Below are positions 1 to 58,112 of a stretch of DNA of 64,000 nt, piece by piece. The stretch's first letter is position 1; each line of letters starts with the position of its first letter. Position numbers and translations under genes: made by a program. Below the pieces are notes generated by a model, which was not told where the DNA came from, searched no databases, and was given only the letters and a program-made list of their open reading frames with translations. This stretch comes from Lama guanicoe (lineage: Eukaryota): positions 1-64,000 of the forward strand of contig MU056802.1 in assembly GCA_013239625.1 (NCBI GenBank), written 5' to 3'.

Positions 1-203
1 GGGGGGGGGGCGTCGGGACCGCCAGGCGCTTTGGGGAAGGTTGGATTCCCTTTGGCCATTCTTGGCTTCCTTTGGCGCCTCTTCTGAGGTCTCCCACGTC
101 CTTGTACAGGGAGTAACACGTGTGTGGACGTTGTCCTCGGGGCGCTCTGAACCTCCTGCAGGCCTCGTGGCGGACTTGAGATAAAACAGGTTCTCTTGTT
201 CAG

Positions 204-9102
<8,899 letters not shown>

Positions 9103-9775
9103 GGCGGGACGACTCCCGAGTGGGCGCTGCCCACGGGCCTACACTTCCCGTCATCAGGACCCTGACCCTGACCTTGGCTGTGCCACGTCCACCCAGCTGG
9201 CTGGACGTGCTCCAGGCCGGATTGATGGCAGCGGCCCCGTGGGCGACAGGGCCGGCATGTGTTGGGGCCCCGTAGGTGCTCGGGGCGGCCGCTGGGCCCG
9301 GCTCCTCGCCTGGTTCTCGTCAGGACACCGTCAGGAACAGACAGGAGCAAATGAGCGCTGTGATTCGGGGAGGCCCTGCCCACCCGGGAGCCTTCTTCCT
9401 TCTCCTGAGAAAATCGAATTCTGACTGCATTCCTGAGGCCCGACTGTCCTCCTGCTGGCCGTGCAAGGGCTTCGTGGGTGTCCTGGGGCCTCTGTCACCT
9501 GGGGCTACTCTGGCTCCCTGGAGCCCAGGGTGTGATCAGAGGCCGGAGCTGAGGGGACAGCCGGGTGCAGCTCAGCCTGGGGTCTCAGAGCCTGTGGACA
9601 CGCCCTGACCTGAGGGTCTGGGGGCATCTGTGACCTGGGGATATGGGCTCCTGGCTGGCTGTGGTGTTTACACGTTGGACTCAGGGATCCTCCCACTGCC
9701 CTGCTCGGGCTGGGAGGGGCTGGGCGGGCAAGTCACCTGCTCCCAGGCCAGCCCGACAGATGGACTTTCAGTCGG

Positions 9776-9781
9776 GATAAA
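9776..9781 (+). terminator. Probable variant poly(A) signal (GATAAA) of MAN1B1
   Basis: GATAAA about 670 nt after the stop, followed by a GT/T-rich downstream stretch; I noticed no AATAAA earlier in the UTR. Confidence 0.5.
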
Positions 9782-10556
9782 AGTACATTTGTTCCATCTG
9801 GTGTCTGCTGTCTTTAAACAAGTCTTGGCTCTCTGAAAGTGCACTGTGGAAGTGATGGGCAGTAGTTGGGTCAGGCGCACTTTGGTCCACAGGTCAGCTC
9901 TGCATCTGCCAGCAGTGGCGGGACTTTGGACGTGTCGGCTGTACAGGGCAGGTGATGGCCACTGTGGTGCCCAGAGCAAGGACATGGGCAAGATGCTTCA
10001 GGCCCCTGCTTGCGGCTTCCCTGCCAGGTGTGGGAGTCTCAGAGTTGTCATTCCTAGAGCCTCTGGCCCCTCAGGATCGTGTGCCCGGGGCGGCCCCAGT
10101 GTCACCAGGCCCAGGCCTGCCACTTGGCTTGGGGTGCCCTGGGGCTCCCAGCCTCCCCTCACTCACAGGCCCCACGCGCTATGTGCATGGAAAGTGTGTG
10201 GCTTGTCTCTCCAGTGGTCTCCAGTCCCGGCCCTTGTGGCTGCTGGCTGCTCGCTGCAGAGCCCCCCAAGCTGGGGGGGTGCCCTGTGGTCCCTGTCACC
10301 CCCTACCGCTGCCAGGCCAGGAGCCAGTCAGCACCTGTGTGGGACTCCCGACCGTGAGGGTTCCCAGTCCTACTGCAGGGTGCAGCCTGAGGCTGCTGAG
10401 AAGCCGACTGTCCAGCCCACACCCAGGCTTGGCCCCAGGCAGGCAACCTGGGAGGCAGCCAGGCTCCCCAGAGGGGCCCTGCCTTGTTAGCCGCCTGCCA
10501 CAGTAAAGGCCATGTCCCCATTGCCCAAGACAGCCAGCAGTGGAGCTGAGAACTGC

Positions 10557-10562
10557 TTTATT
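10557..10562 (-). terminator. DPP7 poly(A) signal AATAAA
   Basis: TTTATT on the + strand, about 230 nt past the DPP7 stop. Confidence 0.75.
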
Positions 10563-10791
10563 CAACAGTGAGTTTAGGAGGTCACGTGTTTGTGCTCAGT
10601 GCCCTGCTCTCCTGACCTGGCCATAGCCAGGACAGGACATGCTTGCCAGGCTGCCAGTGTTCAGCCTCTCCCTCGGGCAAGGGCCTGCCCACCCTGGGCT
10701 GAGCTCTGGGTTTAGGAAGGTGGGCCATGGCTTCTCTCCCCAGACTGCTGCTCTGGGCAAGGCTTCTCTGGTCCCACTGCGGGAGCGCCCC

Positions 10792-13700
10792 TCAGCCTCT
10801 AGGCCTTGTATGCTGTGCCAGTCGCCGCTCCTGCCTGGCTGCCTCCACCCACTTGCCAATGATGGTGGCCTCCAGCTGGCGCGCCTCCACCACAGATTCC
10901 GGGTCCTCTGGGTGGGATGTTCTGAGGAGCAGGTGTGGGGGGCACTCAGCTAGGCTGGCAGACCCCGACACTCATACTACCCTCGCCCATGACCAGCCAT
11001 CGGCCCAGGCCAGGAGCTGCGCCCCTCCCAAAGCAGGGCTGTACCTGAGGTCCAGGTGGTGTGCTCCCCCGTGGATGGTGATGGCGAGGACCGACGAGCT
11101 CAGGTTGCTCTGGATCTGTGTCAGTGAAGGAGACTCGTGTCAGGAGTGCGGTGTGCGCTCACCCTCAGCCCTCCCAGCACAACGTGATGGCTACACAGCC
11201 CAGCTTTCAGGGTGCACTGAGGTGGCTGCATAGCCTGGAAAGGTCCCGTTAGAAAGGAAAGGCTAAGGTTAATGAGCCAGATGCAAGGTCACCATCAGAG
11301 GTTAGGAAGAGAACGAAAACAGAGGGAGAGGAGGAAACGATGACGACTGGAACAGTACATGAAGGAGCTACAGAGCCCAGAGCGCTGGGACCCACACAGC
11401 AGGGGGGCCAGGGGCTGCCTGGCGTGACTCACCCCGCCCCCTGCCCAGGGGTCCAGGTCACCATTGGAGAAGATGATGTTGCTGGCAGCTGTAAGATCTG
11501 AAAGAGAGCACGTGGTGGTGGGGACCAGGTACAGCCCCCCAAATCCGTGATCCAGGGGCTGGGTCAGACCCCAGCTGTATCCCAGGAGTGGGAGGGGGCA
11601 GAGCCAGCTCAGTGCAGAGGGAAGGATGCCGCCCCAACCCCTGCCTCGAGCCTCACCGCCCCCCCCGAAGCTGGTCTGCAGCCAGTCCTGCCGGGGCCAC
11701 ACGCCCCACGTGTCCAGGCAGTACTGCTGGCGGAGGGCCTCGGTGAACGGCAGGTCGGGGAAGATGTCTGACACGTTGTTGCTGGAAAACGTCAAGCTGA
11801 TCTCAGTACAAGCCTGTGGGACACCCGCACCATGGTCAAGCCGATGGGGTGGTCCATCTTGTTAAGCACCCCCATACCCGGAAGTCGCAGGCCCCCAGCA
11901 CCCCCATACCTGGTAGTCCCAGGCCTTGGCATTGGGGCCCAAGCCACAGCCTGTGGGGTCCGCACAGGCCTGGTACTGCAGGTAGATGTCATAGCAGGGC
12001 GCCAGGCCTGAGGAATTGTACACCAGCCCTGGGGGAGAGGCGTGCTGGGGCCAGGTGCCTGGACACCCACCCTGCCCCCTTGGAGGGTTCCTGCAGGTGT
12101 CAGGAGCTCTGGGATCCCATGGGCCCAGTGAGGAGTGGGGTGTCTGGGGTCTGGGCTATCAGCTCCTGTCCTGGCTGCTGAGGGCAGCTGGGCAGCCCGC
12201 TCGATATTCCCCCACCCAGCAGGGCGTGCCACCCTTTGCACCTGGGGACTGCAGAGGGCCCTTGGAGCCCCGCTCCCAGGCTGGGCCAGGAAGGGAATGG
12301 CCACTTCCTCCCCAGGGGCCAAGTGGAGGCCTCTGTGTGCCCTGCCCCCATGCAGCCCTCGCTGGGCCTCACTCCTCAGCCCACCACCACCGTCGGGCCC
12401 CTCACACAGGGCAGCAGCCCGGGAAGGTGGGCAGACGCACCAGCCAGCTCACGGAGCCCCTTGATCCTCTGGCTTTTGCTCAGCAGCCGCTCACAGCCGA
12501 CCTGGAGTTGCCAGAAGAGTGCCTCAGCCGGTGACCCCTCCTTGAGACATGCAGCCCCCTCCCCAGCTCACCCTTCCCTGCTCCCAGGTGGCAGAGTAGG
12601 TGCAAGGCCCTCAAGCTGGCCAGCACTGACCACCCCTTCCCTGTCCATGGGACGCTGCCTTCCCCTGATTCCAGCCAGACGGGAGTGGGCGCCTTGCCTT
12701 GACGGGGTTGGCAGGAAGATGCCCCATGAAGTCGGTGGGGTATGGGTAGTCCATCATGGCCAGCAGGGTGAAGGCATTCCGGGCGAACCCAAAGAGCTGC
12801 AGTAGGTCCTTTGAGCCAGAGAGCAGCTGGCAGGTGCCAAACTCCTGGCTGACCGTGTCATAGTCTGGCAGGAGGGGTGGGACAAGGGCCTCTGGAGGCT
12901 GCGGGCTCTGGGTCAGGGGGTGGGGCAGGGAGGCAGGGGCCGGTGGGGGGCTGCCTCCTCACCTCCCTGTAGAAACAAGTCCTTGATCTGCTGGAAGGCA
13001 TCCCGCGCGGCCTGGGCACACTCAGGACTCTGGCCCTCAAAGTCCTAGAGGAGGAGAGGGCGTGGCTGCAGGCCCTGCTGCCTGGGCTGTCCAGGGGCCC
13101 CGAGCCCTCACTTACCGCAGAGACATCCCGGAAGAACTGGTAGGGGTCACCGAGGCCTGCCACTGCGACGACAGGTGCGCTTGCCGCCAGCGCCCCCGCC
13201 ACGAGGTGGGGGTACTTCATCCTCAGGTAGGCGCTGAGCATCCCCCCATAGCTGGGCGACAGTGCAAGGTTAGCTCTCCGGCCCCCAACCCGCACAGCAT
13301 CTGCCCACCTGCCCCAGGAGGGCGACCTTTCAGCCGGCATACGCCCCCTACATCCCCACTCTGCTCTCCCTTCTCAGAGCCACCACTCCCCAACTTCTTG
13401 CCCCTGAAGGCCCTGAAACCTCTAAGGCCCGTAGAAATTCTGGCCGAGAAAAAGCAAGCGTTTGTTCCAGGAGAGAAAGGAAAGGAGGACGCACCTCCCG
13501 CCAAAGGCGATGGCAGGGGCGTCCAGGGCCCCAAGCTTCCGCCGCAGCGCCCGGAGCAGCCCTGCGAAGTCGGCCAGGGCCTGCTCCACCGTCAGCAGCT
13601 CCGTGTACCCGCGCCACGTGGACCGCTCCCCGAACGGAAGCGACTTTCCGTAGTACCGCTGCGGGCAAGCGACCGGCAGACACTGGTCCAGCGCCCCCAC

Positions 13701-14245
13701 TGGCCCCGCGCCGCCCCCGCCCTGGCCCGCCGCGGCGGGTACCCACGTGCTCCGCAAAAACGACAAGGGCTGCCTGCTGCGCCGCCAGCTCCAAGATGAA
13801 CCCTGAGTTGTTGGCAAAGGACCACACGTCCCCCTCGTTGCCCGTGTAGAAGAATATGGGCCCCTCGCCCCTTTTCCAGAACTTCTCTGTCAGGTGGAGG
13901 CAAGGGGCCGGGTGAGGTGTGGGGCGCCCCGGGTCTCACCGGTCACCAGGAACGGTCCCCAGGGTGATCTCACCTGACACTAGGAACCGCTGGAGGAAGG
14001 TCTTGTTCCCAAACCTCTCGAAGTTGAAATGGTCCAGGAGCTGCTCGAAGTAGGCCTCCTGAAAGCCAGGGTCTGCGTCTCTGTGGACTGGAGGGCAGGA
14101 CGCTCAGCGGGCAGGGGACGCGCGGGTGGCAGGGGAGGCCCGCGGGTCGGCACTCACCCCTGGCCTCCAGGCTGCGCAGCTCCAGTGCCAGCAGCAGTGC
14201 CAGGGCCCAGAGCAGGGCCTGCCTGGGCGGGGGGCTCACGTCCAT
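10792..14245 (-). CDS. DPP7: Dipeptidyl peptidase 2 (S28 family), 13 exons, about 497 aa. Exons: 14158-14245, 13974-14087, 13747-13886, 13495-13658, 13116-13251, 12963-13044, 12698-12864, 12441-12501, 11910-12028, 11657-11813, 11433-11497, 11045-11115, 10792-10921
   Basis: Signal peptide ([11 protein letters not shown]), [31 protein letters not shown], catalytic [23 protein letters not shown]; exon lengths sum to 1494 nt (in frame). Confidence 0.96.
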
Positions 14246-15269
14246 TTTGCCCGTTTGCTTCGGGTCATGTGGGCAAGGTCAGGTGACGGCGGGGCACCCT
14301 CACGTGACGGCCTGGGCGGGGCTGTGAGCAGCGCCAGTCCTTCCTTCTCTTCCAGCTGCCCTGCTTCCAGGTCCTTAAGCCCAGGTCCTCAAGCTTCGGG
14401 CAGCCCTGTGTCACCATGGAGACTGTCTCCGTGGGGACACGTGAAGTGGGGTGAGGGCTCCAGCGGCCAAAGGGGAGGGGCGCTCCCAAGGGCAGGGCTG
14501 GGAAGGCTGCCTGCGGGGGTGGCTCTGACTGACCCTTGAGGATGGTCACGGGGTCCCTGAAAGAGGGTCAGCGGCCCTGAGAACGGAGCCCCAGCTGTTC
14601 CAGGGACAGTGAGGGCCGGTGTGGCTGCGGCAGGAGGCGGGTGGTCGGGAGCCCCCCAGGCAGGAGTTAGGGCGGCTCCTGGCGGGTGAGAGGGATCTGG
14701 GGTCCTCTCCCCTCCCCCTCGGGCTAGTCCCGTCCTGGCTCCTCAATGAGATGGGGTCCCAGGAGGTGCCAGTACCGAGAGGACAAAGGGGCAACCCTTG
14801 CCCCTGTGTGTAATCCAGGGCCTGGTGAGGGGCCAGCTGGGCCACAGAGGGCACCATGCCAGTCCTGCTGGGGATGTGGGCAGGGAGCCAGGCCCAAAGC
14901 AGGTGGGGGGAGGTGGCCCTGCCCTAGGCAGCAGAGGGGAGGGGAGCCACCCCTACCCACTCCCAGGACTGTCCTTGGGCAGCAGGACTCATGGCTTCTG
15001 CCCAGGCCTGGCCTGTCTGGTGCTGGGATGGCCCAGGCTGGGCTGGGGTCCTGGGCTCTGACTGCGCTGTGAAATCAGGAAACTGGGCCAGCCTGGGGGG
15101 TGAGTGGGGTGTGGTCCACGTGTGCAGCCCTTTGGCTTTCCCTCCCACTGTCCCAGGACTGTTGCTGTGGCAATCCGCAGGGTGACAGTGACTGTCCATT
15201 GTGTGACACCACCCTATGGCTGTGGTCACCCCGAGGTCACCCAGTGCCACACCACAATCACCCCACAGT

Positions 15270-15725
15270 CTCTGTGTCCCTGGCCCTGTGACCCTATCCC
15301 CATCCTTTGGTCCCTGTGTCCCCATGTCCCCATGTCCCTCTGTCCATGTCCCCATGTCCCTGTGTCCCCATCCCTGTGCCACCATCCCTGTTTCCCCATG
15401 TCTCCCCTGTTCCCATGTCTCTGTGTGCCAAATCCCATGTCCCCGACCCTGTGTCCCCATCCCATATCCCCGTCCTTGTGTCCCATCCCCCCATGGCCCC
15501 GTCCCTGTGGCCCCGTGTCTCCCATGGCCTCGTGTCCCCATCCCTGTGTGCCCACCCCTATGTCCCCGTCTGTATGTCTCCATGTCCCTATGTCCCCATC
15601 CCCATGTCCCCAGCCCTGTGCCCCTGTCCCTGTGTCCCTGTGCCCCCATGTCCCCACCCCTGTGTCCCCAGGTTCCCATGTTCCCGTGTCCCTATGTCCC
15701 TGTTCCTGTGTCCCTGTCCCCACAC
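15270..15725. repeat. Degenerate TGTCCCCA-type minisatellite upstream of DPP7
   Basis: Dozens of TGTCCC(C)A/TGTGTCCC units; they produce the spurious GH/PC-rich ORFs. Confidence 0.85.
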
Positions 15726-16299
15726 CTAGGGATGCCTGTTCTGTGTTGAGGAGAGAGCTGCCCTTGCAAGCCCCCCATGGCCTCTTTAGGTTGGGGGCCA
15801 GGACAAGACACAAGGACTCGCAGCCCCTCTCCTGGCTTCTCCCGCTCCCCTCCCCTCCTCTCAGCTCAGGGGCCTGAGCCGACCTCCCAACGCTGACCCA
15901 CCACACTCCCCTTCCAAACTCTCCAGGCAGCTCCTCCATGCCTGGGGTGGTACCGGGAAGGCCCATGGAGGTGCGTTCTGATTCCCTCCGACACTGTCCT
16001 GCCACACCTGGTGGCCCTGAGCATGCAGGTGTGTCTGAGGGTCCAGAAGCCCTTCCCCCAGCTGCCTGAGGTCGCTGACTTTGGGAATAAGGCTGGGGCC
16101 TGATTCCGCCTCCACAGCCCACAGATCTGGGGAGCCAGACCCTCGTCACAACCTATTCTGCCCCTTTCAGACCTCAAAGCTGGCAGGCTCAGAGGATGGG
16201 GGTGGGAGAGCGGGAGGACCCTACGTAGGTCCCAGGGCTCTCAGCTCTGGCCCATGTGGCACCTCCACTTGCGGCCACGTCACGGGTGTGTGTGAACTG

Positions 16300-19200
16300 A
16301 CACCCTTTTACCATGTTCATGTTCATTGGATTCAAGAACATCCGCACCATCGTTATTATCTAGTTCTAAAACGACTTCATCTTCCATCACAGAAGCTCTT
16401 CACTCATTGAGCTGCAATTCCCAATTCCCCTCCCCCAGCCCCTACTGTCCTCTCTGTCTCTATGAGTTTGCCTACTCTAGGTACCTCATATGAGTGGAAT
16501 CCCACAGAACTTGTCTGTGTCTGGCTGGTTTCACCGAGCCTAAGGTCTTCAGGGTCCGTTCGTGTCGTGGTGCATGTCAGGACGTCCTCCCTTTTTAAAG
16601 GCAGATAACACCCCGTTGCACGGGTGGACCACACCATGCATGTCCATTCCCCCATCAGTGGACACGTGGGGCGTTTCCCCCTTTTGGCTATTGTTAACAG
16701 TGCTGCTGTGAGCCTGGGTGTATGGACACCTCTTCAAGACCCTGCTTTCAATTTTTGGCAAGTATATACACAGAAGTGGGACTGCAGGACCATATGGTAA
16801 TTCTGTTTCCTTTTTGGAGAAACTGCCGAACTGTTTTTCCACAGTGGCTGCACCATTTTGCATTCCAGCCAGCAGTGCACAGAGGTTCCAGCGTCTCCAC
16901 AGCCTCATCGAGCCCTTGTTTCCCATTTAAGAGCAGCCATTGCCATGAGGGTGAGGCGGTCCCTCGTGATTTTGATCTGCATTTTCCTGATGATCAGCGA
17001 TATTGGGCAGCTTTTCATGTGCTTATGGAACATTTATCAGTCTTCTTTGGAAAAATATCTGCTCAGGCCCTAGCCAAGGGCTGTCCCCAGGCAGGTCCCG
17101 GTGCCCTCAGCTCCGACCCGCGTAGCACCTTGCAGTCGCATGTCCACGTTCATGTGTGTGGGTGCTACGTTACACATAATACATAAGGTTCCCTTGTGGC
17201 ACTGTGAAACGTGTTTTCATTCTTTGTTTATGCATTGCTGAGTTTTAGGAGGGTTTTTAGTTGCAGAATTTGGGTTTTTTTGTTTTCGATGTGTTTCAAA
17301 AGGTTTTGTTTGCTTTCGTTACTAAGTTTTAGAACTTTTAAAAAATATATTCTGGTATGTATGACCGAAACATCATGCTGTCCACCAGATATTGTCACAG
17401 CATTGTAAACTGCCTGTACATCAATAAAGAGGAATGCTCTACATATACACATATGTATATATTCTGATGGTTTAAACTCGCACAGGTACGTAGTTTGCAG
17501 GTATTTTCTCCCCTTCCAAGGGTTGCCTTTTCACGCTTGTTAGTGTCCTTGGGTGCACAAAAATTTTCATTCTGATGAAATCAACTTGTCTGTGTCTTCC
17601 ACTGCTTGTGCTTTGGCGTTTTATCTAAGAATCCATTGTCATTTCCAAGCTCATGAAGCTTAACCTGTATGCTATGTTTATAGGGCTTTCATGCTTTTAG
17701 CTCTAACGTTTAGGTCACTGATCCATTTTGAGTTAACTTTTTGTATGTGGTGCGAAGTAGGGGTCTAACTTCATCCTTTGCACGTGGAAATCCAGTTTTC
17801 CCAACATCATTTGTTGAAAACGAATTATTTCCTCCATGGAATAGACTTACTACCCTTGCGAAAACCAACTGGCCGCAGATATACGAGTTTATTTCTAGAC
17901 CCTTACTTGGGTCCTGTTTTGAATACTGTGCCTTTGTAGGATGTTTTAAAATTGGGAAATGTGTGTCTTCCAACCTTGTTCTTATTCAAGATTATTTTAG
18001 CGATTCAGTCCCCGCCCCTTGCAATGATTCCATGTGAAATTGGGGATTGACTTTTCAACTTCTGCAAAAAAAAAACTGCTGGAATTTTGACAGGGATTGC
18101 ACTGAACTTGCAGGTGACTTTGGGCAGTACTGACCTCCTAAAGTCAAGTCTTCCCACTCCTCATTTGTGTCTCCTTTCTTTCAGCAACACCTCCCTGGTT
18201 GAATTTATTTCTGGTCATTTTATTCTTTTAGATGCTATTTTAAATGGAATTGCTTTCTTGACTTCCTTTTGGATTGGTCATTGCAGGTGCATAGGAACAG
18301 GACTGATTCTGCTGGTTGATCCAGTACCTTGCCACTTTCCTGAATTTATTAGCCCTGGTAGCTTTCTTGTAGATTCTTTTGCACACAGCTTCTAGATATT
18401 TTTCCTCTGGGTTACCATGGAGATTACATTTAGCACTGTAAATTTATAATGATCTACTTCAATGGACAACTTCCGTCAGTAACATACATAAACTATGCTT
18501 CTAAACAGCTCCATCCTTTCCTCTTTGTGTTACTGCCATCGCATATTACGTGTTTGTACATTACATGCACAATGACATACATTTGTAATTATTTTTATGC
18601 ATTTGTCTTTGAAGTCCGGTGGTAAATAAAAAGTTGAGTCACAACCAAAAATACAATACTAATGCTTCCACTTACCCATGGATTTGCCTTTAACAGAGAT
18701 CTTAATGTCTCCCCATGTCTTCGAGGTGCTGTCTCAGGTCCTATTATTTCAGTCTGAAGGACTCCGTTCAGCATTTCTGGCTGGGCAGAGCTGGTGGCAA
18801 CAAACTCTCACTTTTTGTTTATCTGGGAATGCCTCAAATTCTGCCATATTTTTGAAGGTCATTTTGGCCAGATATAGAATTCTTTGCTGACAACTTTTCC
18901 CCCTATCAGTTTATGTATGTCGTTCCATTGTCTTCTGGCTTCTATCGTTTTTTGGTGAGAAATTATGTTATCTTACTGAAGACTGCTTGTACATAACAAG
19001 TAATTTCTCTTGTGCTATTTTCAAGATTCTGTCTGTCTTTCAACAATTTGATTATTTAAGCGTCTTGGTGTGGGTCTCTTTGAGTTGATCCTACTTGGAG
19101 ATCATTGAGCTTCTTGGATTTATAGGTTCATACCTTTCATTAAATTGGAGAAGTTTTAAAGAATATTTTTTCAAATGTTCTTTTTGCCCTCTTCTGTCTT

Positions 19201-19700
19201 CTCTGAGACTACTATAATGCACACGTGAGACCTGCTTAGGATAGGATCCCAGAGGTCCCCTGGTCTCTGTGCACTGTTCTCCACTCTTTCTTTCTGCTCT
19301 TCACATTAGTTTCAATAGTCCTGCCTCCACCTTTGCTCATTCTTTCTTCTGGCTGCTCAAATCTGCTACTGAGCCCCCTAATGAAGTTTTCATTTTAGTT
19401 ACTGTACTTTTCAGTATGAGACTTTGTTTCCTTTTAATAATTCCTCCTTATTGATACTCTCATTTTGTTCATATGTTATTTTTTATGACTGCCTTTACTT
19501 CCATGTGCATGTTTTCTTTGCACTCTTGTTAGCATTGTAAAGAAAGTTCTCTTAATGTCTTTTTGTAATAATTCTGATATCTGCAGTTCTTCAGGGATGG
19601 TGGCTATCAACATTTTGTTCCTTTGAGTGGACCGTACTTTCTTGTTTTTTAAATTTTCCCAGTGATTCTGTTGTTGCTGCTGTTGAAATATGGTTTTGAT
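16300..19700 (-). mobile_element. Cluster of old LINE-1 fragments, mainly antisense
   Basis: AT-rich; typical antisense L1 ORF2/3'UTR text (e.g. gaccatatggtaattctgttt...gaaactgccgaactgtttttccacagtggctgcaccattttgcattcc); decayed RT C-terminal-like peptide in ORF 16549..16926; boundaries approximate. Confidence 0.8.
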
Positions 19701-19869
19701 GGTTCTGATTTTTTTAATGTTTATGCGGGAATGAAAGCTTGGAGCTGCCTACTCTGCCTTGTGGATGACAACCTACCCTCTTCTTTGGCTTTGCTGGTCT
19801 TTCCATTATACCTAAGTTCCGTATTGCATTAACTTTTATTCCATCATTAGCTACACCCCTTTCCTGTCT

Positions 19870-20035
19870 GGTTTTGTGGTAAGCTGGATAAGATGCCACT
19901 ACCTATTCCAAAACTAAATATGCAACCTGACATGACAAAAGGAAAGCTGTGGGTGGAATTAACTTAAGGACTGAAGATAGCAAGATTGTCCTGGATGGAA
20001 ATATGACTATCAGAGGACTAGAGTTGGAGATGTGA
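19870..20035 (+). mobile_element. Degenerate MLT1-like (ERVL-MaLR) LTR remnant next to the duplication breakpoint
   Basis: aatatgcaacctgacatgacaaaagga...aattaacttaagga...gattgtcctggat resembles the MLT1 5' consensus as I recall it. Confidence 0.45.
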
Positions 20036-20126
20036 CAGCAAAACAACTTCAGTCTCTCAATCTATACCCAGACATTTCACAATGACGGAGATCTGCTTAC
20101 CAACATGGGAAATATCACAGTTAGAG

Positions 20127-21578
20127 CAAATGTACTTTTATCCCGACTGAAAGTCCATCTGTCGGGCTGGCCTGGGAGCAGGTGACTTGCCCGCCCAGCC
20201 CCTCCCAGCCCGAGCAGGGCAGTGGGAGGATCCCTGAGTCCAACGTGTAAACACCACAGCCAGCCAGGAGCCCATATCCCCAGGTCACAGATGCCCCCAG
20301 ACCCTCAGGTCAGGGCGTGTCCACAGGCTCTGAGACCCCAGGCTGAGCTGCACCCGGCTGTCCCCTCAGCTCCGGCCTCTGATCACACCCTGGGCTCCAG
20401 GGAGCCAGAGTAGCCCCAGGTGACAGAGGCCCCAGGACACCCACGAAGCCCTTGCACGGCCAGCAGGAGGACAGTCGGGCCTCAGGAATGCAGTCAGAAT
20501 TCGATTTTCTCAGGAGAAGGAAGAAGGCTCCCGGGTGGGCAGGGCCTCCCCGAATCACAGCGCTCATTTGCTCCTGTCTGTTCCTGACGGTGTCCTGACG
20601 AGAACCAGGCGAGGAGCCGGGCCCAGCGGCCGCCCCGAGCACCTACGGGGCCCCAACACATGCCGGCCCTGTCGCCCACGGGGCCGCTGCCATCAATCCG
20701 GCCTGGAGCACGTCCAGCCAGCTGGGTGGACGTGGCACAGCCAAGGTCAGGGTCAGGGTCCTGATGACGGGAAGTGTAGGCCCGTGGGCAGCGCCCACTC
20801 GGGAGTCGTCCCGCCCTAGGCGGGGGCCCAGATGGGCAGGGGGTGAGCCTCAGTGTTGAACACGTAGGTGTCCAGGCTGAGCAGGTTTGGGTCGTCAGAG
20901 AAGAGCAGGTACAGGTACTTGAGCGTCTCCCCCAGAAAGAAGCTCTCCATCTTGTCCCTGGGCTGGGGATTGCTGGGGTCCTGCACGTTGCTGATGGAGG
21001 AGTAGCCGCCCGAGGGGACCTGCACGAGAGCCCAGGCCTCAGCGTCAGGACTGCGGGCTCGGCCCTCTCGAGGACGGCCAGCCAGAGGCACCCTCTGAAG
21101 GCCCCTTCCCACCGCAGCACACACAGTCCCCCAGGGCAGGGACTAGAATGGGGAGATCACCGGGGCCCACAGGGGGACCTGCCGCCCTGGCAGTCAGCCA
21201 GCATTCCTCTGGATGCCCCTGGGGGATGCCAGCAGCCCTCAAGTGACCAGATGGAAAGGGCCTTGGAGGTCTTGCAAAGGCCCTGAGGTCACGTGATGGG
21301 AGTAAACTACACGGCCTCACATGCCACAGGGTAAGGGTCAAGTGACCTCTGAGCCGTGGCCCCGCCTGTGAGACGGGTGGCCGAGCCTGAGCACAGTGCG
21401 GGTGGCGCCATGGTCATGGCAGCCGTCCTGGGGAGCAACAGCCCAGAGGTCACCCCAGGTGCAAACGTGCTGTCCAGGCCACTCAGAGGACCCAGGAGGG
21501 ACACGCAACGTGCACCTCAGGCCACTGCAGGGACCCTCGCCACACATGCTGGCCCCCTGCCCCTGGGTCATTTGCACC
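20127..21578 (-). repeat. Inverted duplicate arm A = reverse complement of 8340-9791 (MAN1B1 intron 12, exon 13, 3'UTR)
   Basis: Paired coordinates sum to 29918 (ORF 8794..9102+ mirrors 20816..21124-); sequence is nearly identical. Confidence 0.97.
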
Positions 21579-24500
21579 TAGAGACACATTATCTTCACGT
21601 AACCCAATCTCTGTGGCATAATAGCTGTGTCGGGCAAGACTTGGGGCGCCAGTGGCTGCGTCGGGTCACGGGTCACCCCCTGAACCACGAGGCCCCTCTG
21701 ATGCAACAGAAACATCCAGGGCCCACATTCGGCCCTCCGGGGGCCAGAAGGGACACCTGTCCTGAGCCAGCCCTGGACGCCCAGACGTAAGGGGACAAAG
21801 GAATTGCCCATGGCCAGCACGTCCATCCTAGCACCCAGGAAGGGGGGATGTGTGGTCCAGAAGGGAAGAGCGCCACTTAGATCTCCTGGGCAAGGCTGGC
21901 CCACGGCCCGAGGGTCACCCACGGGGACCTGGCTGCACAGTAGGAAGGAGAGATACCTTTCTTCAGACCCAAGATCCACATGGTGTCCAGGGCGTCGATC
22001 AGCGTGAGGCCGAGGCCGAACCACTCACTGAAGGACCTGGACACGGGCCTCAGCTCGTCATGGCCCCAGGCGAACTTGCGGTACCCGGCCCACGCATGGC
22101 GGAAGGCGTCGATCACGGCCTTCTGGCGCTCCTTGGGGGAGGCTGGGGGGTAAGCCAGCTGTGAGGACCAGTCAGCACTGAGACCAGCTGCTCTGTGGTC
22201 CCACAGCGAGCGATGCAGATGGGGGGACACTGTCCAGGCCACAGGAAGCAGGGGACCGCAGAGAAGGCCAGGACGCTCAGTGCCGGACCTGGCCGCCAAG
22301 CCCGGCTGTCCACCTGCACCAGGGGCCTGGCAGGTGTGACCCTCCGGGGCGCCGGGACACTCAAGGAGCAAAGGTAACCGAGGCCCCAGAAGCAAGGCAG
22401 CTGCGCTGCGCAAAGTGGCTGTGGGGACGTCCAACGTGACAGGGGCCGGTGACCCGGACGAGAACACCTGACGAGCATCCCTCCCGGGGCTGCAGGGCTG
22501 GACACGGGACGACAGACCGTCCAGGACCCACGTGTCCTCACTAGCGCTCTAGTGCGTGCCTGGCCCCCGACGCCGGGCCCCCGGGGTGTCCCAGGCTGCG
22601 CAGCGCCCGGAGGCACAGCAGGAGCTGCACCGCCCGCCCCGCGGCGCCTCTGCGTGTCCACACCCCATCTCTGTCCAGATGCCCAGGTGAGGCCCGGGAG
22701 GGCGCAGGCGGGACCTTACCTGCCGGGTTCTGAATCCCGAGGGCCTGTGGGGAAGGCCTAGGGGGGCCCTCTGCCTTCCTAGAAGGGAGCTCGCTGCCCT
22801 GCTCCGGCTCCATCACTGCTCCCCTCCAGCTAGGAGGAGAGAAGGAAAAGCATTCAGAGCAGCTCAGGGGGGCAAATGCCCCGCGGTCGCTGCCCAACTC
22901 AGGCTCGGATGTGCCCTCCACGCGGCAGGACCACGAGGAGGCGGGGCCCTGCCTCACCAGGCGCAGACTGTCTGCCTCAAAGGAGAACACACGGCAAACA
23001 TCATGGGAGTTCTCCTTGTTTTTCGGAAAAGAAAACAGCAAAGAGACCAGCCTCCTGGTTGCTCACGTTCAGACCCGTCTGCCCGCGTACCTGATGGTTC
23101 TCTGCCCCTTTTCGTCCACCGCGTCTGCCCTCCTCTCGGCCTCATCCTGCCCCCTGTCCTTGGAAGCTCTGTCGGGGGCTCTGATCTGCAGGTTGGGTGG
23201 TCCCCGTCGGAAATGCCTTGGAGGCTTCTGGACAAAACAAGAGTCACTCCTGAAAGGGCGCACCTGCCGACGAGCTGCTGTCCTTTTCCGCCCGGGGCGC
23301 TCTCCGTGGCCAGACCCCGCCACGCGGAGTGCCGTGGGCCGGCTGTGCGGCTGTGCTGTCCCAGGGGAAGGTCTTTTCACTTCTCCTGCGATGTGCAGAT
23401 TTGCGGGGAGCTCTGGGTACCCGGACGGAGGCTTTGCCGACGGGCGAGGACAGCCCGGGTCAGCGGGCCAGCCCCGGCCAGGACGTTTACAGACGTCAGA
23501 CCCTAAGGGTGGCCAAGAAGGGGTAGAACCACCGTGTCCCCATGGGCGGAGCTGCAGAGAATGCTGTCGCTGGCCTGCGTCTAGGGCTCCCCAGCTTGGT
23601 CCTCAGAGCACTGTGGCGGGGTGGCCGGGCAGCGACAAAGCGCCGTGCGGGGAGCAGCCCCGCTCCTGGCACAGCCAGTCCCCACCAGCGGGTGTGCTCG
23701 GCCACCGCTCCGGGGAGGGAGGGTTGCCTGCTTGTGAGCGGAAAACCCTTGCTTTTCAGGATCTGTGGCAGCCTCGGGAGAGGGTCTGTGAAGACATCTT
23801 CCTTGCAAAGATTCAAACCCCAGGAGCTGGGGCCCCTGGGCCAAGAGAAGGGGGCCTGGCCGAGACGAGGCACTGCAGCCAAAGTAGGCCTGGACGAGTG
23901 CTGGGGTCCAGGCGACAGAAGGTCTAAGAAGGTGGCCTCCAGAAGCCCAGCGTGCCCGAGGGGACTTGGGCCAGGGAAGAGGCACACACTCACCCCGTCA
24001 CGTCCACGCCCCTCCTGGACACCAGCGCCCGGCTCGTGGACGTCGAGGTGTGGACGTGTGTCTTTCAGTTGGGGAAACGCGCCACCTTGTGCTTTCACAC
24101 GACCGTGAAGGTCAGCGTGCAAGAGCGCGGCCGCAGGAGGGACAGAATGCGTTTGGGCTCTTGAGGGGAGAAATCTGGCCTTTTCCACAGGCCCTCACGC
24201 CAGACACGGGAGAGCGGCCTCCTGTCTCTCCCCAGGGCAGCCCTGCAGGGTGTGAGCCAGCACCTGGCCCGGATCCCCTCCTGGCGGCCCCGGCACCCAG
24301 CCAGCGGGGGAGGCTCCCCAGGTGCACAGCTCCCAGTTCTCCAAGGCCAGCCCACGAGCCACCTGCCTTTGGAGGGGTCCTTCCCTGGCTCTCTCGCTGC
24401 CAATGACGCCCTCTAATCTCCACACCCTGCACTGCACGCGTGGGGCTGCCGCAGAGCTAGGCCTGCCCCTTTCCTCCAGCCTTTGTGGACGCCACGCACC

Positions 24501-25175
24501 CCTGCACCTGAGCACTCCCAAACCTGTATCCCAGGATGCAACTCTGACCCTCGGGGCCCCCACACCTCCGTCTGGGCACAGCCCGGGCCAGGACCTCCCA
24601 GAGAGAAGGGATGGGTTTTGTTCACACCCTGCCGGGGTCCGGCCCTGCAGGTGTGCAAGTAAGACGAGCAAAGAACATTCCTCCTCCTCTCCCTGCTACC
24701 ACTTGCCCGACCAGCCCTGAGCAAGGAGGGTGAGGTTAAAGCCTCCAACAGACGGGAGAAAAAGAGTTCTCCCCAGTCTGCCTGAAACAGCACGTACTGC
24801 TCTGAAGTGCTTCTGGAACGGACCCGCTTACAAGTCCACACACAGTGTATTCAAAGTACCTGCGGTGAGAGCCCCGGGAAGGTTTCTGGGTGAGCGTCTG
24901 CTTTCTGAGGGGCTGGCAGGACCGGTGGGTTTGCTGGTCTCATCCTCTGCCCTTCCGCTGACCTGTTCTCGGCTGAACAAGAGAACCTGTTTTATCTCAA
25001 GTCCGCCACGAGGCCTGCAGGAGGTTCAGAGCGCCCCGAGGACAACGTCCACACACGTGTTACTCCCTGTACAAGGACGTGGGAGACCTCAGAAGAGGCG
25101 CCAAAGGAAGCCAAGAATGGCCAAAGGGAATCCAACCTTCCCCAAAGCGCCTGGCGGTCCCGACGCCCCCCCCCC
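21578..25175 (-). repeat. Inverted duplicate arm B = reverse complement of 1-3598 (MAN1B1 intron 2 to intron 6); probably continues beyond 25175 with its partner outside the window
   Basis: Paired coordinates sum to 25176 (ORF 335..763+ mirrors 24413..24841-; 1249..2265- mirrors 22911..23927+). Confidence 0.97.
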
Positions 25176-27019
25176 CACAGCACACAACACTCCCCTCGCA
25201 GTTTTGGTTTCAGCACGTATGGACGGTGGCAAGCGGGCAGTCTGCTCGAGCACCCACTGGGCCTTTAGTTTTCCTCCTCCAGAGCCAGTTCAGAGGAGCT
25301 CGGGAGGGGTCCTCCGCGTGTGTGCCGGCACCCGGCCCGCTCCGTCCCCAGCGCCCGGCAGCACGCGTGAGGATGTTCCCGGAACGTGTCTGGACTGAGC
25401 CTCCACCCTCAGGACCTGAATCTCACTGTGAGACGGAGGAGCAGGTGCCAGCGCTTAACCAGACGCCCGGGAAACAGCCAGCCGGCCTCAGAGTGACACC
25501 CACGTTGCAGCCAGGTGCTGGGGACGCTCTCGGCCTGTCTCTCCATTTCCATTTCCTGCCAGTCTGTGAGGTCCCCCTCCTGCAGCTGCGAGGTCGCTGC
25601 GCTACTGCCTAGTCACCCCCAGCCCCCTCAGCTGTCCCGTCAGGAGGGTGCCGCGGGTACCTGGCCACTGGTCAGACGTGCTGACGTAGGTCAGGAGGCC
25701 ACAGAGCATCAGAAAGGCCAGCAGGAAGAGAATGGCGTTCCGCTGAAACCTGGACAGCTGCTTCCATTTCTGAGGGCGGGCAGAGAACGACACTCTTTAC
25801 TGACAGTAACACAACGGGAAACCTCAACTGTGGCAAACTCCTTGAGGACGAGGAGGAATTCAGAAGGTCCAGTGAGGGGCCCTGTTGCTTTTGAAATGCG
25901 GGAAGCTCCGTCTCAGCGGGGACCACACTGCAGCTGACACACGGCACTGGTGGCGCGATGCGAACGAACACACACGTCGGAAGCGCTTCCGCCCCACGCG
26001 TGGGCAGTGGAGAGAGACGGGCAACTCTCGTGTCCCGGCTGAGGCCGGGGGGGCCTTGCCTCTGCTGAGATGTGCGGGGCCGCCGCCCCGCAGCCCGGGA
26101 CCCGGGACAGCAGGACCGGTGGCCCCCACCTCCTCGCCCCTGAAAATGTGCAAGTTCTTTGTGTCTCATTAAAGACTTTGTGGAACGGAAATTGAGTACT
26201 AACTGACTATGGTTTTGGCCGCTGGATATTCTTGACCCATTAGGTCTTATAATAGGACCACTGTGCCCTCAGCAAACACAATTTATTGAGGTGAGGTCAA
26301 GTACAATTTGCACAACTTAAATTTGGGATCAGTGATATAATGGAAACTTACGAACCAGAAGGGGCCTGTTGGGCGCCCAGGAAAAGGGGATGGGTGTTGT
26401 GCTTCTCCTTAATTACTATGAGACCATGGAGTCTGAAATCACAGAATGAAGGTAAGGGAGATTTGTTTGTGTTGTTTGTCACCTCTCAGTAGCCAGACCA
26501 AAATCTCCTGATTCTAGACAGAAGTAAAAGAAAATCACCTCTCAGGATGTAAATCCAGGTCAGAGAAAGAAGTCTGTATAAAGCTTAAAACGGTGACTGG
26601 GGCAAAGTTTGTCCAGAGGAAACAAGATTGAGAAGAAACCTTCTGAATGTCTTAGCTCTAGAGGCCAGCATGAGGACGGACTGATAGACAATGTTGAAGA
26701 CATTAGAAAGCCGAGAGGCAGACAAACCATCAGGAAGCAGATGTTAGAGACCAGAATAAAACTGCACCAAGTTGAAACAGAAATGTAATCAGATTACTAA
26801 AACACCACTAAGGGGCTTACTCCTAGGAACACACACACAGCAATGCTGCGGTGTGAATGGAACACCAGATGTCCGCTCAGCGTGGACTGACTTCCCGGCC
26901 AAGGGCAGGGACCACCTCGGGCACGCAGAGGCACGAGGCCTTCAGACAGGTCCGTCTGAGGGTTCCGTCCAAGGCCACGAACCTCCCTCTGTGAAGCCTT
27001 TCTGTGAGGAACACGCCCC

Positions 27020-27255
27020 ACAGGAGGGACTGGACCCGGGCAGGAGGACGGACTGGACCCTGGCAGGAGGGGGGACTGGACTCCCGCAGAAGAGGGGACT
27101 GGACCCCCGCAGGAGGGGGGACTGGACCCCGGCAGGAGGAGGGGCTGGACCCCCGCGGGAGGAGGGGCTGGACCCCGGCGGGAGGAGGGGCTGGACCCCC
27201 GCGGGAGGGGGGCTGGACCCCCGCGGGAGGCGGGCTGGACCCCCGCGGGGGGGGT
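27020..27255. repeat. G-rich ~22-bp VNTR (GGAGGGGCTGGACCCCCGCGG-like) in intron 1 of the MAN1B1 copy
   Basis: About 10 imperfect copies of (GA)GGGGCTGGACCCC visible. Confidence 0.85.
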
Positions 27256-27279
27256 AAGCCTCTGATTGGGGCCCCTTGC

Positions 27280-28040
27280 GGGCGGCAGGCGGCCGCGTCG
27301 TCCGTGCTCAGGCGACAGTGTGACAGCGCCGGCCTCAGCCGTCTCATCGCGTCCCAGACGACCTCGTCCGAGGCTGGGTCCCAGGCGTCTCGGTCCGGCT
27401 GTCGCCGCCGCGGCCGAGCCCTGGACGCCAGGGGCTCCTCCGTCCTCCCCGAGGCACCGGCGCAGGCTCGGCCCGGCCGGGGACCGCGACGGCCTCCCGC
27501 CCGCGCCGCGCGGCCCCGCAGTCCCGGCCGGCGGCCCTCACCGAGCGGCGCCGCCAGCCGCTGCCGCGCTCAGAGCTGCGGCCGGGGCTCAGCCTCAGCG
27601 CGAAGCAGTCCCCACGCGGCGCGGGGGGCGGATACATGGCCCGGACGGCCCTCGGGGGTCCGGAGGCCGGCTCGGAGCGGGCGCGGAGCTCGCCGGCCTA
27701 AAGCCGCTGCTGGCGGCTAGCGCCGCGCCCTCCACGACCGGCCTCCGCGAGCGCAGCGCGCACGCGCAGGGATGGGACCTGGGGCGCCGTTCTGCGCCTG
27801 CGCAGGCCTCCTCCGAGCTGGGCGCTGGCCATGGCAACAGAAGCGCGCGGCGGCCATGGCAACAGAAGCGCTCGGCTTCCGCGCGGGCAGGTCTCCCGCC
27901 GCTCCGCCAGGCTGGCAGGGAGCTCCCGCGCCCCGGACCCGGGGCCCCACCCGCCCCAACACCAGGCAGATTTGAGGAGGGTTCCCGGCCATCAGTCCTT
28001 TCGCTGAGGCCGCCCGCTGAGTTGGACAGACGCGCTCTGG
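27280..28040 (-). promoter_or_regulatory. CpG-island promoter of the MAN1B1 copy
   Basis: Dense CpG; NRF1-like TGCGCCTGCGCA at 27793-27804; two copies of GGCCATGGCAACAGAAGCGC (27827-27846, 27852-27871) containing an RFX X-box-like GTTGCCATGG. Confidence 0.75.
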
Positions 28041-28098: not shown

Positions 28099-28250
28099 AG
28101 GGGAGGGTATATAGCTCAAGTGGTAGAGCACATGATTAGCATGCATGACGTCCTGGGTTCGGTCCCCAGTACCTCCGTTTAAAAAGAAAAATTAATAATA
28201 GATTGAAAACTAATAGACCTAATGACCCCCCCCCCAATAAAACAAATAAA
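28099..28250 (+). mobile_element. tRNA-derived SINE, Vic-1-like (camelid)
   Basis: GGGAGGGTATATAGCTCAAGTGGTAGAG (A box) ... GTCCTGGGTTCGGTCCCCAGTACCTCC (B box), then an A-rich segment, a C-run and an A-rich tail. Confidence 0.8.
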
Positions 28251-29739: not shown

Positions 29740-31560
29740 AGGGAACTCTTTGTTCCTAGTAAGATTTTTGTCTTAAAGTTGATTTCATCTGATTTGAGTA
29801 TAGCTACTCCAGCTCTTATGGTTGCTGTCTGCATGATATATCATTCTCCAACATAACAATTGAAACACATATGCACCTAAGAACAAGGTCCAAAAGCACG
29901 GAGCAAAAAGCTTACAGTGAAGAGAGATTTAGACAATTCGAAGTTAATATTTAATGTCCCACTTTCAATAATAGCTAGAACTTGGCATAGCATAAACAGT
30001 GGCTAGAAGGTGTGGACAGTGCTAGCAACTGACTTGACCTCACTGGCATGTGTAGAGCACTCTGCCCCAGACGGCACAGCACACATTCTTCCCAAGTGTG
30101 CATGAACATTCTTCAGCAGGACCACATGTCACACCATGAAGCAAGTCTACACACATTTAGAGTGTTTCAAGTCGTGCAATACATGTTCTAACCACAATGG
30201 AAGGAATCTAAAAAGAAAAATAAAGCCTTTGGTAATCCCAAAATACTGGGGAAATTCAAACAACACACTTCTAAATCAACCACGGTTCAAAGAAGAAGTC
30301 ACAAGGGGAATCAAAAACAGTTCGAACTGAATGAAAACTGAAAATAAACCAAAAGTTATGGGATGCAACTAAGGCAGAGCTTAGAGGAAAATGTGTAACT
30401 GTAAACATTTATATTGGAAGAGATTTAAAAATCTCAAATTTTAAAACCAAAGTTTCTATCTTAAGCAGCTAGGGGGAAAAAAGCCTCAAACTAAACCAAA
30501 AGCAAGCAAAAGAAAAGAATAAAGTTTAGAGAAATCAATGAAAGAGGAAGCAGAAAAATAACAGAGAAAATCAATAAATTTAATAAAAAATCAAAACATT
30601 TTTAAAAATAAATTTTCAAAAATTAAAAAAAAATTAATTCAAAATGGATCGTAGACCTAAATGTAAGAAACAAAAGTGCAAAACTCTTGAAGAAAACATA
30701 AAATAAAGTCTTTGCAGCTTGGTTAGGCAGGTAGTTTAGATACACCAAAGTGCAATCAGGAAAAGGAAAAGAATTGGTAATAGGCCTTCATCAAAATGTA
30801 AAGCTCTTGCACTTTAAAGAGAACACTAAGAAAATAGGGGAGGGTACAGCTCAGTGGTAGAGTGAATGCTTAGCTTGCACGAGGTCCTGGGTTCAATCCC
30901 CAGTACCTCCACTAAAAATAAATAAATAAGCTTAATTACATCCACCACCACCCCCAAAAAAGGCAATCTTTAGAAAATGACAATATTTTCACAGACTTGG
31001 GAAAGTGTTTACAAAACATGTATCTGATAGAAGGGTTTCATCCATAATATATAAAAACATTAACAACTCAATATCAAGAAGAAAATCAACCCAGTTAATA
31101 CGGGCAACAGAGTTGAGTAGACGTTTCTCCAAAGAGAATATACGTAAGGCCAATACGCACATGAAAAAGTTCTCAGCGCCATCAGTCACTAGGGGAAACG
31201 CTCATTAAAAGGAGCTGCCCACAGTGAGGTGCGTTTACACTTATTGAAACACTTCACCTAATGACAGAAAAACACACAATTTCCTCTAGTGCTCATAGAA
31301 CATTCACCAAAAAAACTGTATTATGGACTGCAAAAGAAGTCTCAGCACATTTGAAATCATACAACCTATGTTCTCTGATCACACTGAGGTTAAAGTAAAA
31401 ATCAATAGCAGAAATACATGCGGAAAAACTCCAGATGTCTGACAATTAAGCAGCACCCTGCTAAGCAAGCCGTAAGTCAAAGAGGGAATCACAGGGGAAA
31501 TCGGAAAACACGGGAGACGCATGAAGCCCGCCACAGCCCGTCGGAGTCTGCAGGGCTCAC
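29740..31560 (+). mobile_element. Old LINE-1 ORF2 fragments, mostly sense
   Basis: A-rich L1-like text (aaacaacacacttctaaatcaacc...aaagaagaagtcacaaggg; aaaatggatcgtagacctaaatgtaaga); boundaries approximate. Confidence 0.75.
30837..30962 (+). mobile_element. tRNA-derived SINE, Vic-1-like, inserted in L1
   Basis: GGGGAGGGTACAGCTCAGTGGTAGAG...GAGGTCCTGGGTTCAATCCCCAGTACCTCC followed by AAATAAATAAAT; flanking AGAAAAT may be a target-site duplication. Confidence 0.85.
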
Positions 31561-35489: not shown

Positions 35490-56880
<21,391 letters not shown>

Positions 56881-58112
56881 GACGCCCTGCCCGCCCTCCT
56901 CTGCCCCCCTCCCCCGCAGACAGACAGACAGACGGACGGGACAGCGGCCCGGCCCACGCAGAGTCCCGGAGCACGACGGGGTCAGGGGAGGAGCGCCCCC
57001 CCAGCCTCCCCCAGGCTGCGCCCGCCTGCCTGCTGGTCGGCCGGCTGGCCGGTCCACCCGTCCCGGCCCCGCGCGTGCCCCCGAGNNNNNNNNNNNNNNN
57101 NNNNNNNNNNNNNNNNNNNNNNNNNNNNNNNNNNNNNNNNNNNNNNNNNNNNNNNNNNNNNNNNNNNNNNNNNNNNNNNNNNNNNNNNNNNNNNNNNNNN
57201 NNNNNNNNNNNNNNNNNNNNNNNNNNNNNNNNNNNNNNNNNNNNNNNNNNNNNNNNNNNNNNNNNAAGGCCCGAGGGAAGCCCACCCGCCAGAGACTGCC
57301 CACCCTGGGCCTCCCGTCCCTACATCTGCCCTGCTGCTGGCCGGCAGCCCCTACTGGACTGAGGCACGGACCAGAGCGGCTGAGGACGGGCCAGAGCTGA
57401 GCGGGCTGGGCAGGGCCACAGGGCGCTCCGGCAGAGGCAGGGCCCTGGGGTCTCTGAGCAGTGGGGAGAGGGGCTGACTTGGCCCCAGGCGGAGGGGCTT
57501 GGAGCAGAGACTGAAGCCCCATCCTTCCCCCAGCCACCACCAGAGCCACAGTGGGGGCCCTTGGCCACCCCCTCCCACAGCGCCCGCACCTCACCGCCTC
57601 GCTCCACCTCTCCTCTTCTTGCTCACGCCCCTCCTCCGCCTGACCCCATCCTCCGAGCTTGCCCTGCCTTTCCCCTTCTGCAGACCCTGACCCTCCCCCC
57701 CAGCTGGCAGCCGCCTCCCAGGGGGTGCTCCAGCTCCCCATTGCCTCCCACCTTCTCTGGACTCTGCAAGGGCTGAGCCTTCTCTTTGCTTCCTCTGGCC
57801 TGCAGCCCAGGATGGGCTTCCCCAGACGCTGGCGCAGGACTGTCCTCAGCCCTGCGCCCCACCTTGTACAGGCCCAGCCCCTCCCGTGTCCCGGCGCGTG
57901 CCTTCCCCCAGCAGCCTGTGTGCAGCCGCGGGCCACCCCTCTGCCCCAGGGGCCGGGCGCGCACCGCCCACCCCCGCCCCGACCCGGTGTGTGCAGTGGT
58001 GATGCCTAAAGGAATGTCACGAAAATTTCGATCTCTGTCGCTTGTTGATGCCTGCAGGGAGTGTGGAGGAGGACACGGGGTAGGGAAGGATTCGAGGGCA
58101 GCCGCGGCCTTC

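Follow-up and report, generated by a model that had tools for sequence, protein, structure and literature searches.

The window analysed here, 64,000 nucleotides of a Lama guanicoe contig (MU056802.1, assembly GCA_013239625.1), holds the 3' part of MAN1B1, an intact DPP7 gene and a second, incomplete MAN1B1 in inverted orientation. The parental MAN1B1 occupies positions 1-9791 of the plus strand, runs off the left edge of the window and is convergent with DPP7, which lies on the minus strand. Comparison of the window with itself identified this parent as the source of the inverted copy: positions 21578-25175 are the reverse complement of 1-3598, and positions 20127-21578 that of 8340-9791. The copy also lies on the minus strand, upstream of DPP7, as the first-pass annotation of this region had stated when it proposed that read-through from the copy might yield a membrane-anchored form of the DPP7 peptidase. 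From the end of the copy at 20127 to the DPP7 ATG at 14245, the two neighbours are 5.9 kb apart.

DPP7 is composed of 13 exons with an open frame of 498 aa, and it retains the Ser-Asp-His motifs GGSYGG, NGDLDPW and GGAHHLDL. Exon 1 (14245-14158) measures 88 nt, ends in phase 1 and codes for 29 residues that include a hydrophobic core; its length, phase and translation agree with the earlier description of a signal peptide exon. Exon 2 (14087-13974) is entered in phase 1 at the acceptor at 14087, and its translation can be aligned with mature human DPP2 as crystallised (3JYH, 4EBB), at residues 5-37. The intact S28 peptidase part is encoded by exons 3-13 (13886-10792, minus strand), among which exons 3, 4 and 5 matched Peptidase_S28 when the exons were searched singly against Pfam.

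The MAN1B1 copy contains exons 1-6 and exon 13. Exon 1 (27637-27542; 96 nt, phase 0) starts with the ATG at 27637, upstream of which there is a stop codon in frame, and the copy promoter is a CpG island (GC 0.78, observed/expected 0.98). Exon 2 (25769-25661), with the donor CAG/gtaccc, encodes a candidate transmembrane signal-anchor. It is followed by exon 3 (24972-24860; 113 nt), delimited by its AG/GT borders and open frame, exon 4 (23227-23091; 137 nt), exon 5 (22829-22720; donor CAG/gtaagg) and exon 6 (22142-21957; 186 nt; donor AAG/gtatct at 21957). Counted on the minus strand, the cumulative lengths at the ends of exons 2, 5 and 6 are 205, 565 and 751 nt, all in phase 1, just as they had first been read. 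Exon 6 matches both human ER mannosidase I (E 1e-31) and the Pfam family Glyco_hydro_47 (E 4e-19), the latter at profile positions 1-51 of 455, while exon 13 (21019-20816), whose acceptor is retained, covers profile positions 398-455. Parent positions 3599-8339, with parent exons 7-12, are missing from the copy, and at least GH47 profile positions 52-335 sit there. A complete GH47 catalytic domain is consequently absent: what remains is the exon 6 part and the exon 13 part, the second of them out of frame after exon 6.

The removal of parent exons 7-12 left a junction at 21550-21660, with the breakpoint at 21578, and the 27-mer across it occurs only once within the window. Outside this junction the arms differ at only 2 of approximately 4,900 positions; the other 11 of the 13 arm mismatches are clustered at the junction and are exclusively substitutions, nine of them transitions, with no indels. 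The copy extends beyond 27,900 and carries two private SNVs, at 21074 and 22436. Most probably, the copy is an inverted partial MAN1B1 duplicate that is either very young or gene-converted. The near identity of the arms would also suit an assembly artefact, that is, a misplaced or chimeric piece of a single true MAN1B1, in which case there would be neither an upstream gene nor a fusion. We regard this as unlikely, given that the copy is not flanked by any run of Ns, that it carries a deletion of its own (4.7 kb) and passes cleanly into unique sequence on its flanks, and that the substitutions beside the junction look more like mutations than like errors of raw long reads. Fourteen DNA runs from four organisms also argue against an artefact, since they contain 0.92-0.95 of the words of positions 12000-21999, although words do not resolve the two copy junctions. 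A retrocopy of a part-processed RNA, with the deletion standing for a spliced-out intron, was ruled out: the deletion lacks GT..AG borders, the remaining introns have been retained and a poly(A) tail is absent. The deletion junction had no match in metagenome contigs and neither did a control, the start of DPP7 exon 2; the host is absent from that collection and the blank is therefore uninformative.

The copy ends in a 3'UTR (20815-20127, minus strand) in which GATAAA, at 20142-20137, is the sole poly(A)-like hexamer of the terminator. Homology to the parent stops 10 nt past this hexamer, at 20127, where the GU-rich downstream stretch and the cleavage region are replaced by foreign sequence. 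The proposal that the terminator is truncated thus stands as far as the GU-rich downstream element is concerned, but the hexamer itself is still in place. Loss of the cleavage region and the downstream element would be expected, from established terminal-exon definition, to weaken both 3' end formation and the recognition of exon 13, two effects that a fusion with DPP7 would need. The tract before the exon 13 acceptor is pyrimidine-poor (8/16), and that before the DPP7 exon 2 acceptor is better (11/16); on the other hand, the intron between exons 6 and 13 would measure 937 nt, against 7,869 nt from exon 6 to DPP7 exon 2. Exon 13 requires phase 0 for its native frame, and a join of exon 6 to exon 13 would produce a frameshift and a product of 291 aa.

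A read-through transcript on its way to DPP7 exon 2 would have to cross an A-rich block, a G-rich minisatellite and the promoter of DPP7 itself. The A-rich interspersed-repeat block (20126-16300, minus strand) extends for 3.8 kb, has 35% A on the minus strand and, on our reading of its sequence, resembles a degenerate L1 inserted in sense orientation; no Pfam domain was found in ten stop-free pieces of it, and a PDB search with one piece was also blank. All seven AATAAA/ATTAAA hexamers of the minus strand, at 19840-17893, fall inside this block, and across 14088-20816 as a whole the canonical hexamers number seven on the minus strand versus three on the plus strand. Sense L1 sequence is known to slow elongation and to trigger premature polyadenylation (PMC3192792). 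The minisatellite (15722-15268, minus strand) spans approximately 450 bp upstream of the DPP7 promoter and is built of units of approximately TGGGGACA on the minus strand.

The donors of exon 2 (25661), exon 5 (22720) and exon 6 (21957) can each be joined to the DPP7 acceptor at 14087 with an open frame, of 536, 656 and 718 aa, respectively. The longest of these is the join that the first-pass annotation had put forward, and translation of the joined exons bore out that it stays in frame for 718 aa. We also arrive at the same estimate of approximately one in three for such a phase match by chance, so that the frame match is not above chance; frame-compatible layouts of this kind are common. 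The exon 6 join would skip the exon 13 acceptor and DPP7 exon 1, and the joins from exons 2 and 5 would skip several further exons. The best 19-aa Kyte-Doolittle mean of the candidate signal-anchor (residues 44-62, with a basic N-flank) is 2.41, a score of hydropathy alone; the type II topology of the predicted fusion would leave DPP7 on the luminal side, where it normally resides. Of the 455 GH47 profile positions, the predicted 718-aa form would retain positions 1-51 only, and such a stub is unable to adopt the barrel fold.

The DNA itself shows the gene layout, the exon phases, the open frames and what is left of the terminator; how the region may be transcribed and spliced is inferred from these. 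One possibility is that the copy promoter is active and its poly(A) signal leaky, and that exon 6 (or 5, or 2) is spliced to DPP7 exon 2 in a recurrent mRNA, giving a type II form of DPP7 that MAN1B1's tail, transmembrane segment and stem would anchor in the ER/Golgi. The arrangement of same-strand neighbours with open frames, the 5' gene's penultimate exon facing exon 2 of the 3' gene, is consistent with such a fusion, as are the loss of the downstream poly(A) element, the orientation predicted for the signal-anchor and the CpG island at the copy promoter. In so recent a duplicate, however, CpG content is no guide to methylation. The intact hexamer and exon 13 acceptor, the one-in-three phase match, and the seven sense poly(A) hexamers and G-rich array along the path all speak against the fusion; furthermore, the GH47 stub of the 718-aa form would probably lead to its degradation, and the cleaner exon 2 and exon 5 forms require more exon skipping. 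On balance, we consider a recurrent fusion mRNA of this kind improbable.

A direct precedent for the fusion is TWE-PRIL (TNFSF12-TNFSF13), in which exon 6 of the gene of a type II membrane protein is joined to exon 2 of a secreted neighbour (PMC6862657). The likeness lies in the intergenic splice from exon 6 to exon 2 and in the cytoplasmic and transmembrane part placed on the functional domain of the secreted neighbour (PMC6862657). Unlike the MAN1B1 copy and DPP7, which offer a frame-compatible layout, TWE-PRIL is proven as RNA and protein, and the predicted 718-aa form would in addition bring with it part of a foreign catalytic domain. With its 5.9-kb gap and would-be intron of 7,869 nt between same-strand neighbours, the locus also agrees with the rule of less than 30 kb for cis-SAGe, or transcription-induced chimeras (PMC4450057), and with the exon pattern known for them, but the 5' partner here is a truncated young duplicate instead of an established gene, and any chimera would be a prediction from the layout.

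The most far-reaching reading is that a lineage-specific chimeric gene was born by the inverted partial duplication, with the MAN1B1 promoter, tail, signal-anchor and stem placed on DPP7 exon 2. By a route like that of TWE-PRIL, a soluble vesicular/lysosomal S28 peptidase would have become a type II enzyme of the early secretory pathway with a DPP4-like architecture. Chimeric new genes of the jingwei type arise from partial duplications, and it is their fixed and expressed chimeric transcripts that identify them. Like them, the MAN1B1 duplicate has a promoter and 5' exons upstream of another gene to which it could donate a 5' end; unlike them, it is known here from its layout and not from expressed chimeric transcripts. 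DPP4 and FAP are type II membrane dipeptidyl peptidases of the S9 family with a beta-propeller. The plan of the predicted product, with a short cytoplasmic tail, a signal-anchor, a stalk and a luminal or extracellular post-proline dipeptidyl peptidase, recalls theirs, but DPP7 belongs to S28 and the resemblance is one of architecture only. We hold the birth of such a gene to be very improbable. If it were true and translated, it would represent a dated case of lineage-specific gene birth by partial duplication and read-through splicing, and the move of a peptidase to a new compartment would bear on the origin of new membrane enzymes.

No MAN1B1-extended DPP7 was found among the best 150 of 258 matches of DPP7 exon 4 to 1.84 billion representative proteins, nor was there any 100% match among the matches listed. 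Matches with a displaced exon position (P0007, P0009, P0050 and others) have S28 only behind junk or unrelated N-termini, with no GH47, and are intron read-through junk. The blank in the protein library counts as a weak negative against the candidate fusion. Of the words sampled from 12000-21999, the RNA runs contain 0.24-0.26 versus approximately 0.16 expected for exons alone, the former being shares in Logan contigs, from which rare forms drop out, and the latter a result of our own arithmetic. These shares cannot separate the copy from the parent, because their exons are identical; the excess over the exon expectation indicates that some non-exonic RNA from 12000-21999 exists, without placing it within that stretch, and it weighs against the explanation preferred below.

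Our preferred explanation, to which we assign a probability of roughly 60%, is that the copy and DPP7 are an ordinary pair of neighbours with at most rare or trace chimeric RNA as a by-product of cis-splicing. With its promoter, exons 1-6 and exon 13 present and the catalytic exons 7-12 deleted, the copy, if transcribed, would most likely be spliced from exon 6 to exon 13, and its RNA would encode the frameshifted product and then end at the retained GATAAA or at a poly(A) hexamer in the A-rich repeat downstream. DPP7 would be expressed from a promoter of its own and keep its native signal peptide. The join of exon 6, 5 or 2 to DPP7 exon 2 would then be a geometric possibility, and a membrane-anchored peptidase would not count as an established product of the locus, at which the inverted MAN1B1 duplicate itself is the firmer matter. 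Read-through chimeras at low level are common between genes that lie close together on one strand, and most have no known function. In human cells, a chimera with the exon pattern considered here was detectable for only 4 of 20 randomly chosen same-strand pairs lying within 30 kb (PMC4450057).

The locus is mammalian, GC-rich and, judged by its protein sequences, not from human, and our rebuilding of its coordinates placed a partial MAN1B1 copy and DPP7 on one strand (minus), with the copy upstream. Exon identities were confirmed through Pfam and PDB searches, one exon at a time. The copy comprises exon 1 (27637-27542), exon 2 (25769-25661), exon 3 (24972-24860), exon 4 (23227-23091), exon 5 (22829-22720), exon 6 (22142-21957) and exon 13 (21019-20816), all with AG/GT borders. 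As described in the first-pass annotation, exons 2, 5 and 6 end in phase 1, at cumulative lengths of 205, 565 and 751 nt. Exon 6 corresponds to positions 1-51 of the Pfam GH47 profile and matches human ER mannosidase I in PDB (E 1e-31), and exon 13 covers profile positions 398-455. An upstream in-frame ATG (MASAQLGG..., 27638-27840, minus strand) reaches a stop before 27637, so that the MAN1B1 frame in this species seems to begin at the MYPPP methionine. The CpG-island promoter of the copy contains a duplicated 25-nt unit (27827-27876), and intron 1 of the copy has 9.9 repeats of a 23-nt unit (27022-27246). Beyond the promoter lie two tRNA-derived SINE copies with GGGAGGGTATAGCTCA...-type heads (28100-28190 and 30835-30920), which resemble a SINE of artiodactyl/camelid type. 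The window's right half contains six N runs of 156-228 bases (38118-38273, 42936-43163, 48490-48685, 54532-54744, 56643-56862 and 57086-57265).

DPP7 runs from 14245 to 10792 on the minus strand, in 13 exons with an open frame of 498 aa that contains the S28 motifs GGSYGG, NGDLDPW and GGAHHLDL; its exons 3-5 match Peptidase_S28 in Pfam. Exon 2, starting at 14087, aligned with residues 5-37 of crystallised human DPP2 (PDB), and exon 1 (88 nt, ending in phase 1) therefore codes for little besides the signal peptide, as had been claimed. The donor of intron 7 is GC (AAG/gcaagg, 12696-12697) instead of GT.

Self-comparison of the window revealed that the copy is an inverted duplicate of the plus-strand MAN1B1 (1-9791), the parent, which is convergent with DPP7. 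In reverse complement, 21578-25175 corresponds to 1-3598, where the parent leaves the window at its edge, and 20127-21578 to 8340-9791. The copy lacks parental 3599-8339, which encodes GH47 profile positions 52-108, 106-169, 170-233 and 278-335. Since exon 13 requires phase 0, the copy's native splice from exon 6 to exon 13 shifts the frame, with termination after 291 aa within exon 13.

The two arms differ at 13 positions, 11 of them inside 21550-21660, at the deletion junction, where comparison with 3516-3598 and 8343-8368 showed the mismatches to span about 110 nt; all 11 are substitutions (nine transitions, no indels). The rest of the arms has two mismatches in ~4.9 kb, and no such cluster was found at the other arm boundary, 20127. 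Judged from sequence, this pattern is more in keeping with error-prone breakpoint repair synthesis than with raw-read error or a gene-conversion edge effect. The copy could instead be an assembly artefact, which we consider rather unlikely: no N run adjoins it, its deletion is private to it, and the junction differences look like mutations and not like read errors. For these reasons the copy is more likely real than not. The deletion junction had no matches among metagenome contigs, but neither had DPP7 exon 2, used as a control, so this comparison is uninformative.

A scripted join of the exon 6 donor to the DPP7 exon 2 acceptor (14087) reproduced the 718-aa open frame put forward by the first-pass annotation, whose description of the sequence was accurate; the exon 2 and exon 5 donors give open frames of 536 and 656 aa. 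We also accept its estimate that such a phase match has about a one-in-three chance of arising by coincidence. The fusion is a prediction resting on that coincidence, along a known mechanism. Cis-splicing of adjacent genes involves same-strand neighbors less than 30 kb apart and joins the penultimate exon of one to exon 2 of the other, rules with which the MAN1B1 copy and DPP7 agree, and about one-fifth of expressed same-strand pairs gave a detectable chimera of such exon pattern (PMC4450057). A close precedent is TWE-PRIL, in which exon 6 of a gene for a type II membrane protein is spliced to exon 2 of a secreted neighbor (PMC6862657), the same exon numbers as would be joined here. If true, the fusion would be a conjoined gene of the TWE-PRIL kind that arose from a partial duplicate.

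The suggestion that the terminator of the copy is truncated was borne out in part. Speaking for the fusion, the GU-rich stretch downstream of the parental poly(A) hexamer is replaced in the copy by foreign sequence, homology ending at 20127, but the hexamer GATAAA (20142-20137), the only poly(A)-like hexamer of the copy, is retained 10 nt before that end. Under terminal-exon definition, a weaker poly(A) site leads to weaker recognition of the last exon's acceptor, and recognition of exon 13 would be weakened likewise. The pyrimidine tract at this acceptor is also poor (8/16, versus 11/16 at DPP7 exon 2). A further point in its favor is that residues 44-62 of the MAN1B1 part are hydrophobic, averaging 2.41 in hydropathy, and have an N-flank that is basic; they are therefore predicted to leave the fused DPP7 on the luminal side, which is normal for DPP7.

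Against the fusion, besides the one-in-three odds of the phase match, both the hexamer and the exon 13 acceptor are intact, and the intron to exon 13 measures 937 nt, compared with 7,869 nt up to DPP7 exon 2. The path also crosses a 3.8-kb A-rich repeat, whose transcribed-sense strand is 35% A and contains seven AATAAA/ATTAAA hexamers; the opposite strand has three in the whole interval 14088-20816. From translated remnants we read this block as sense L1, an identity that Pfam and PDB searches of it left unconfirmed; sense L1 sequence slows elongation and causes premature polyadenylation (PMC3192792). Next come a G-rich minisatellite of 450 bp (15268-15722) and DPP7's own promoter. The minisatellite is imperfect, with units near TGTCCCCA on the plus strand, and has its G-runs on the DPP7-sense strand, just upstream of the promoter.

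The 718-aa form would include 51 of the 455 GH47 positions, a fragment unable to form the barrel, and would probably be marked for degradation; the 536- and 656-aa forms are cleaner but require additional exon skipping. Discounting the published one-in-five rate because the reality and activity of the copy are in doubt and obstacles lie in the spacer, we put a recurrent in-frame chimeric RNA at about one in ten, and a membrane-anchored DPP7 that is stable and carries biological weight appears very improbable.

In Logan contigs, 14 DNA runs from four organisms contained 0.92-0.95 of the words of 12000-21999, and RNA runs X15-X17 contained 0.24-0.26 of those sampled. By our arithmetic exons alone would give ~0.16, indicating that some non-exonic RNA from this interval exists; it could stem from DPP7 introns that are retained, from intron RNA of MAN1B1 or from transcription of the spacer. 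DPP7 exon 4 had 258 matches among 1.84 billion representative proteins, none of them identical. Near-identical matches with a displaced exon were intron read-through translations, and no displaced match among the best 150 carried a MAN1B1 or GH47 N-terminus, a weak negative given that fusion proteins may be hidden in clusters of, or absent from, a library of representatives.

The near-identical inverted arms, 1-9791 (plus) and 20127-25175 and beyond (minus), enclose DPP7 and the repeat block within a spacer at 9792-20126. Judging by this arrangement, recombination between the arms could flip the 10.3-kb spacer and switch the MAN1B1 unit that lies upstream of DPP7. A putative inversion containing UAP1L1, MAN1B1 and DPP7 was reported in a cat/tiger comparison (PMC13047762), only a hint, from a different lineage, that the region may be prone to rearrangement.
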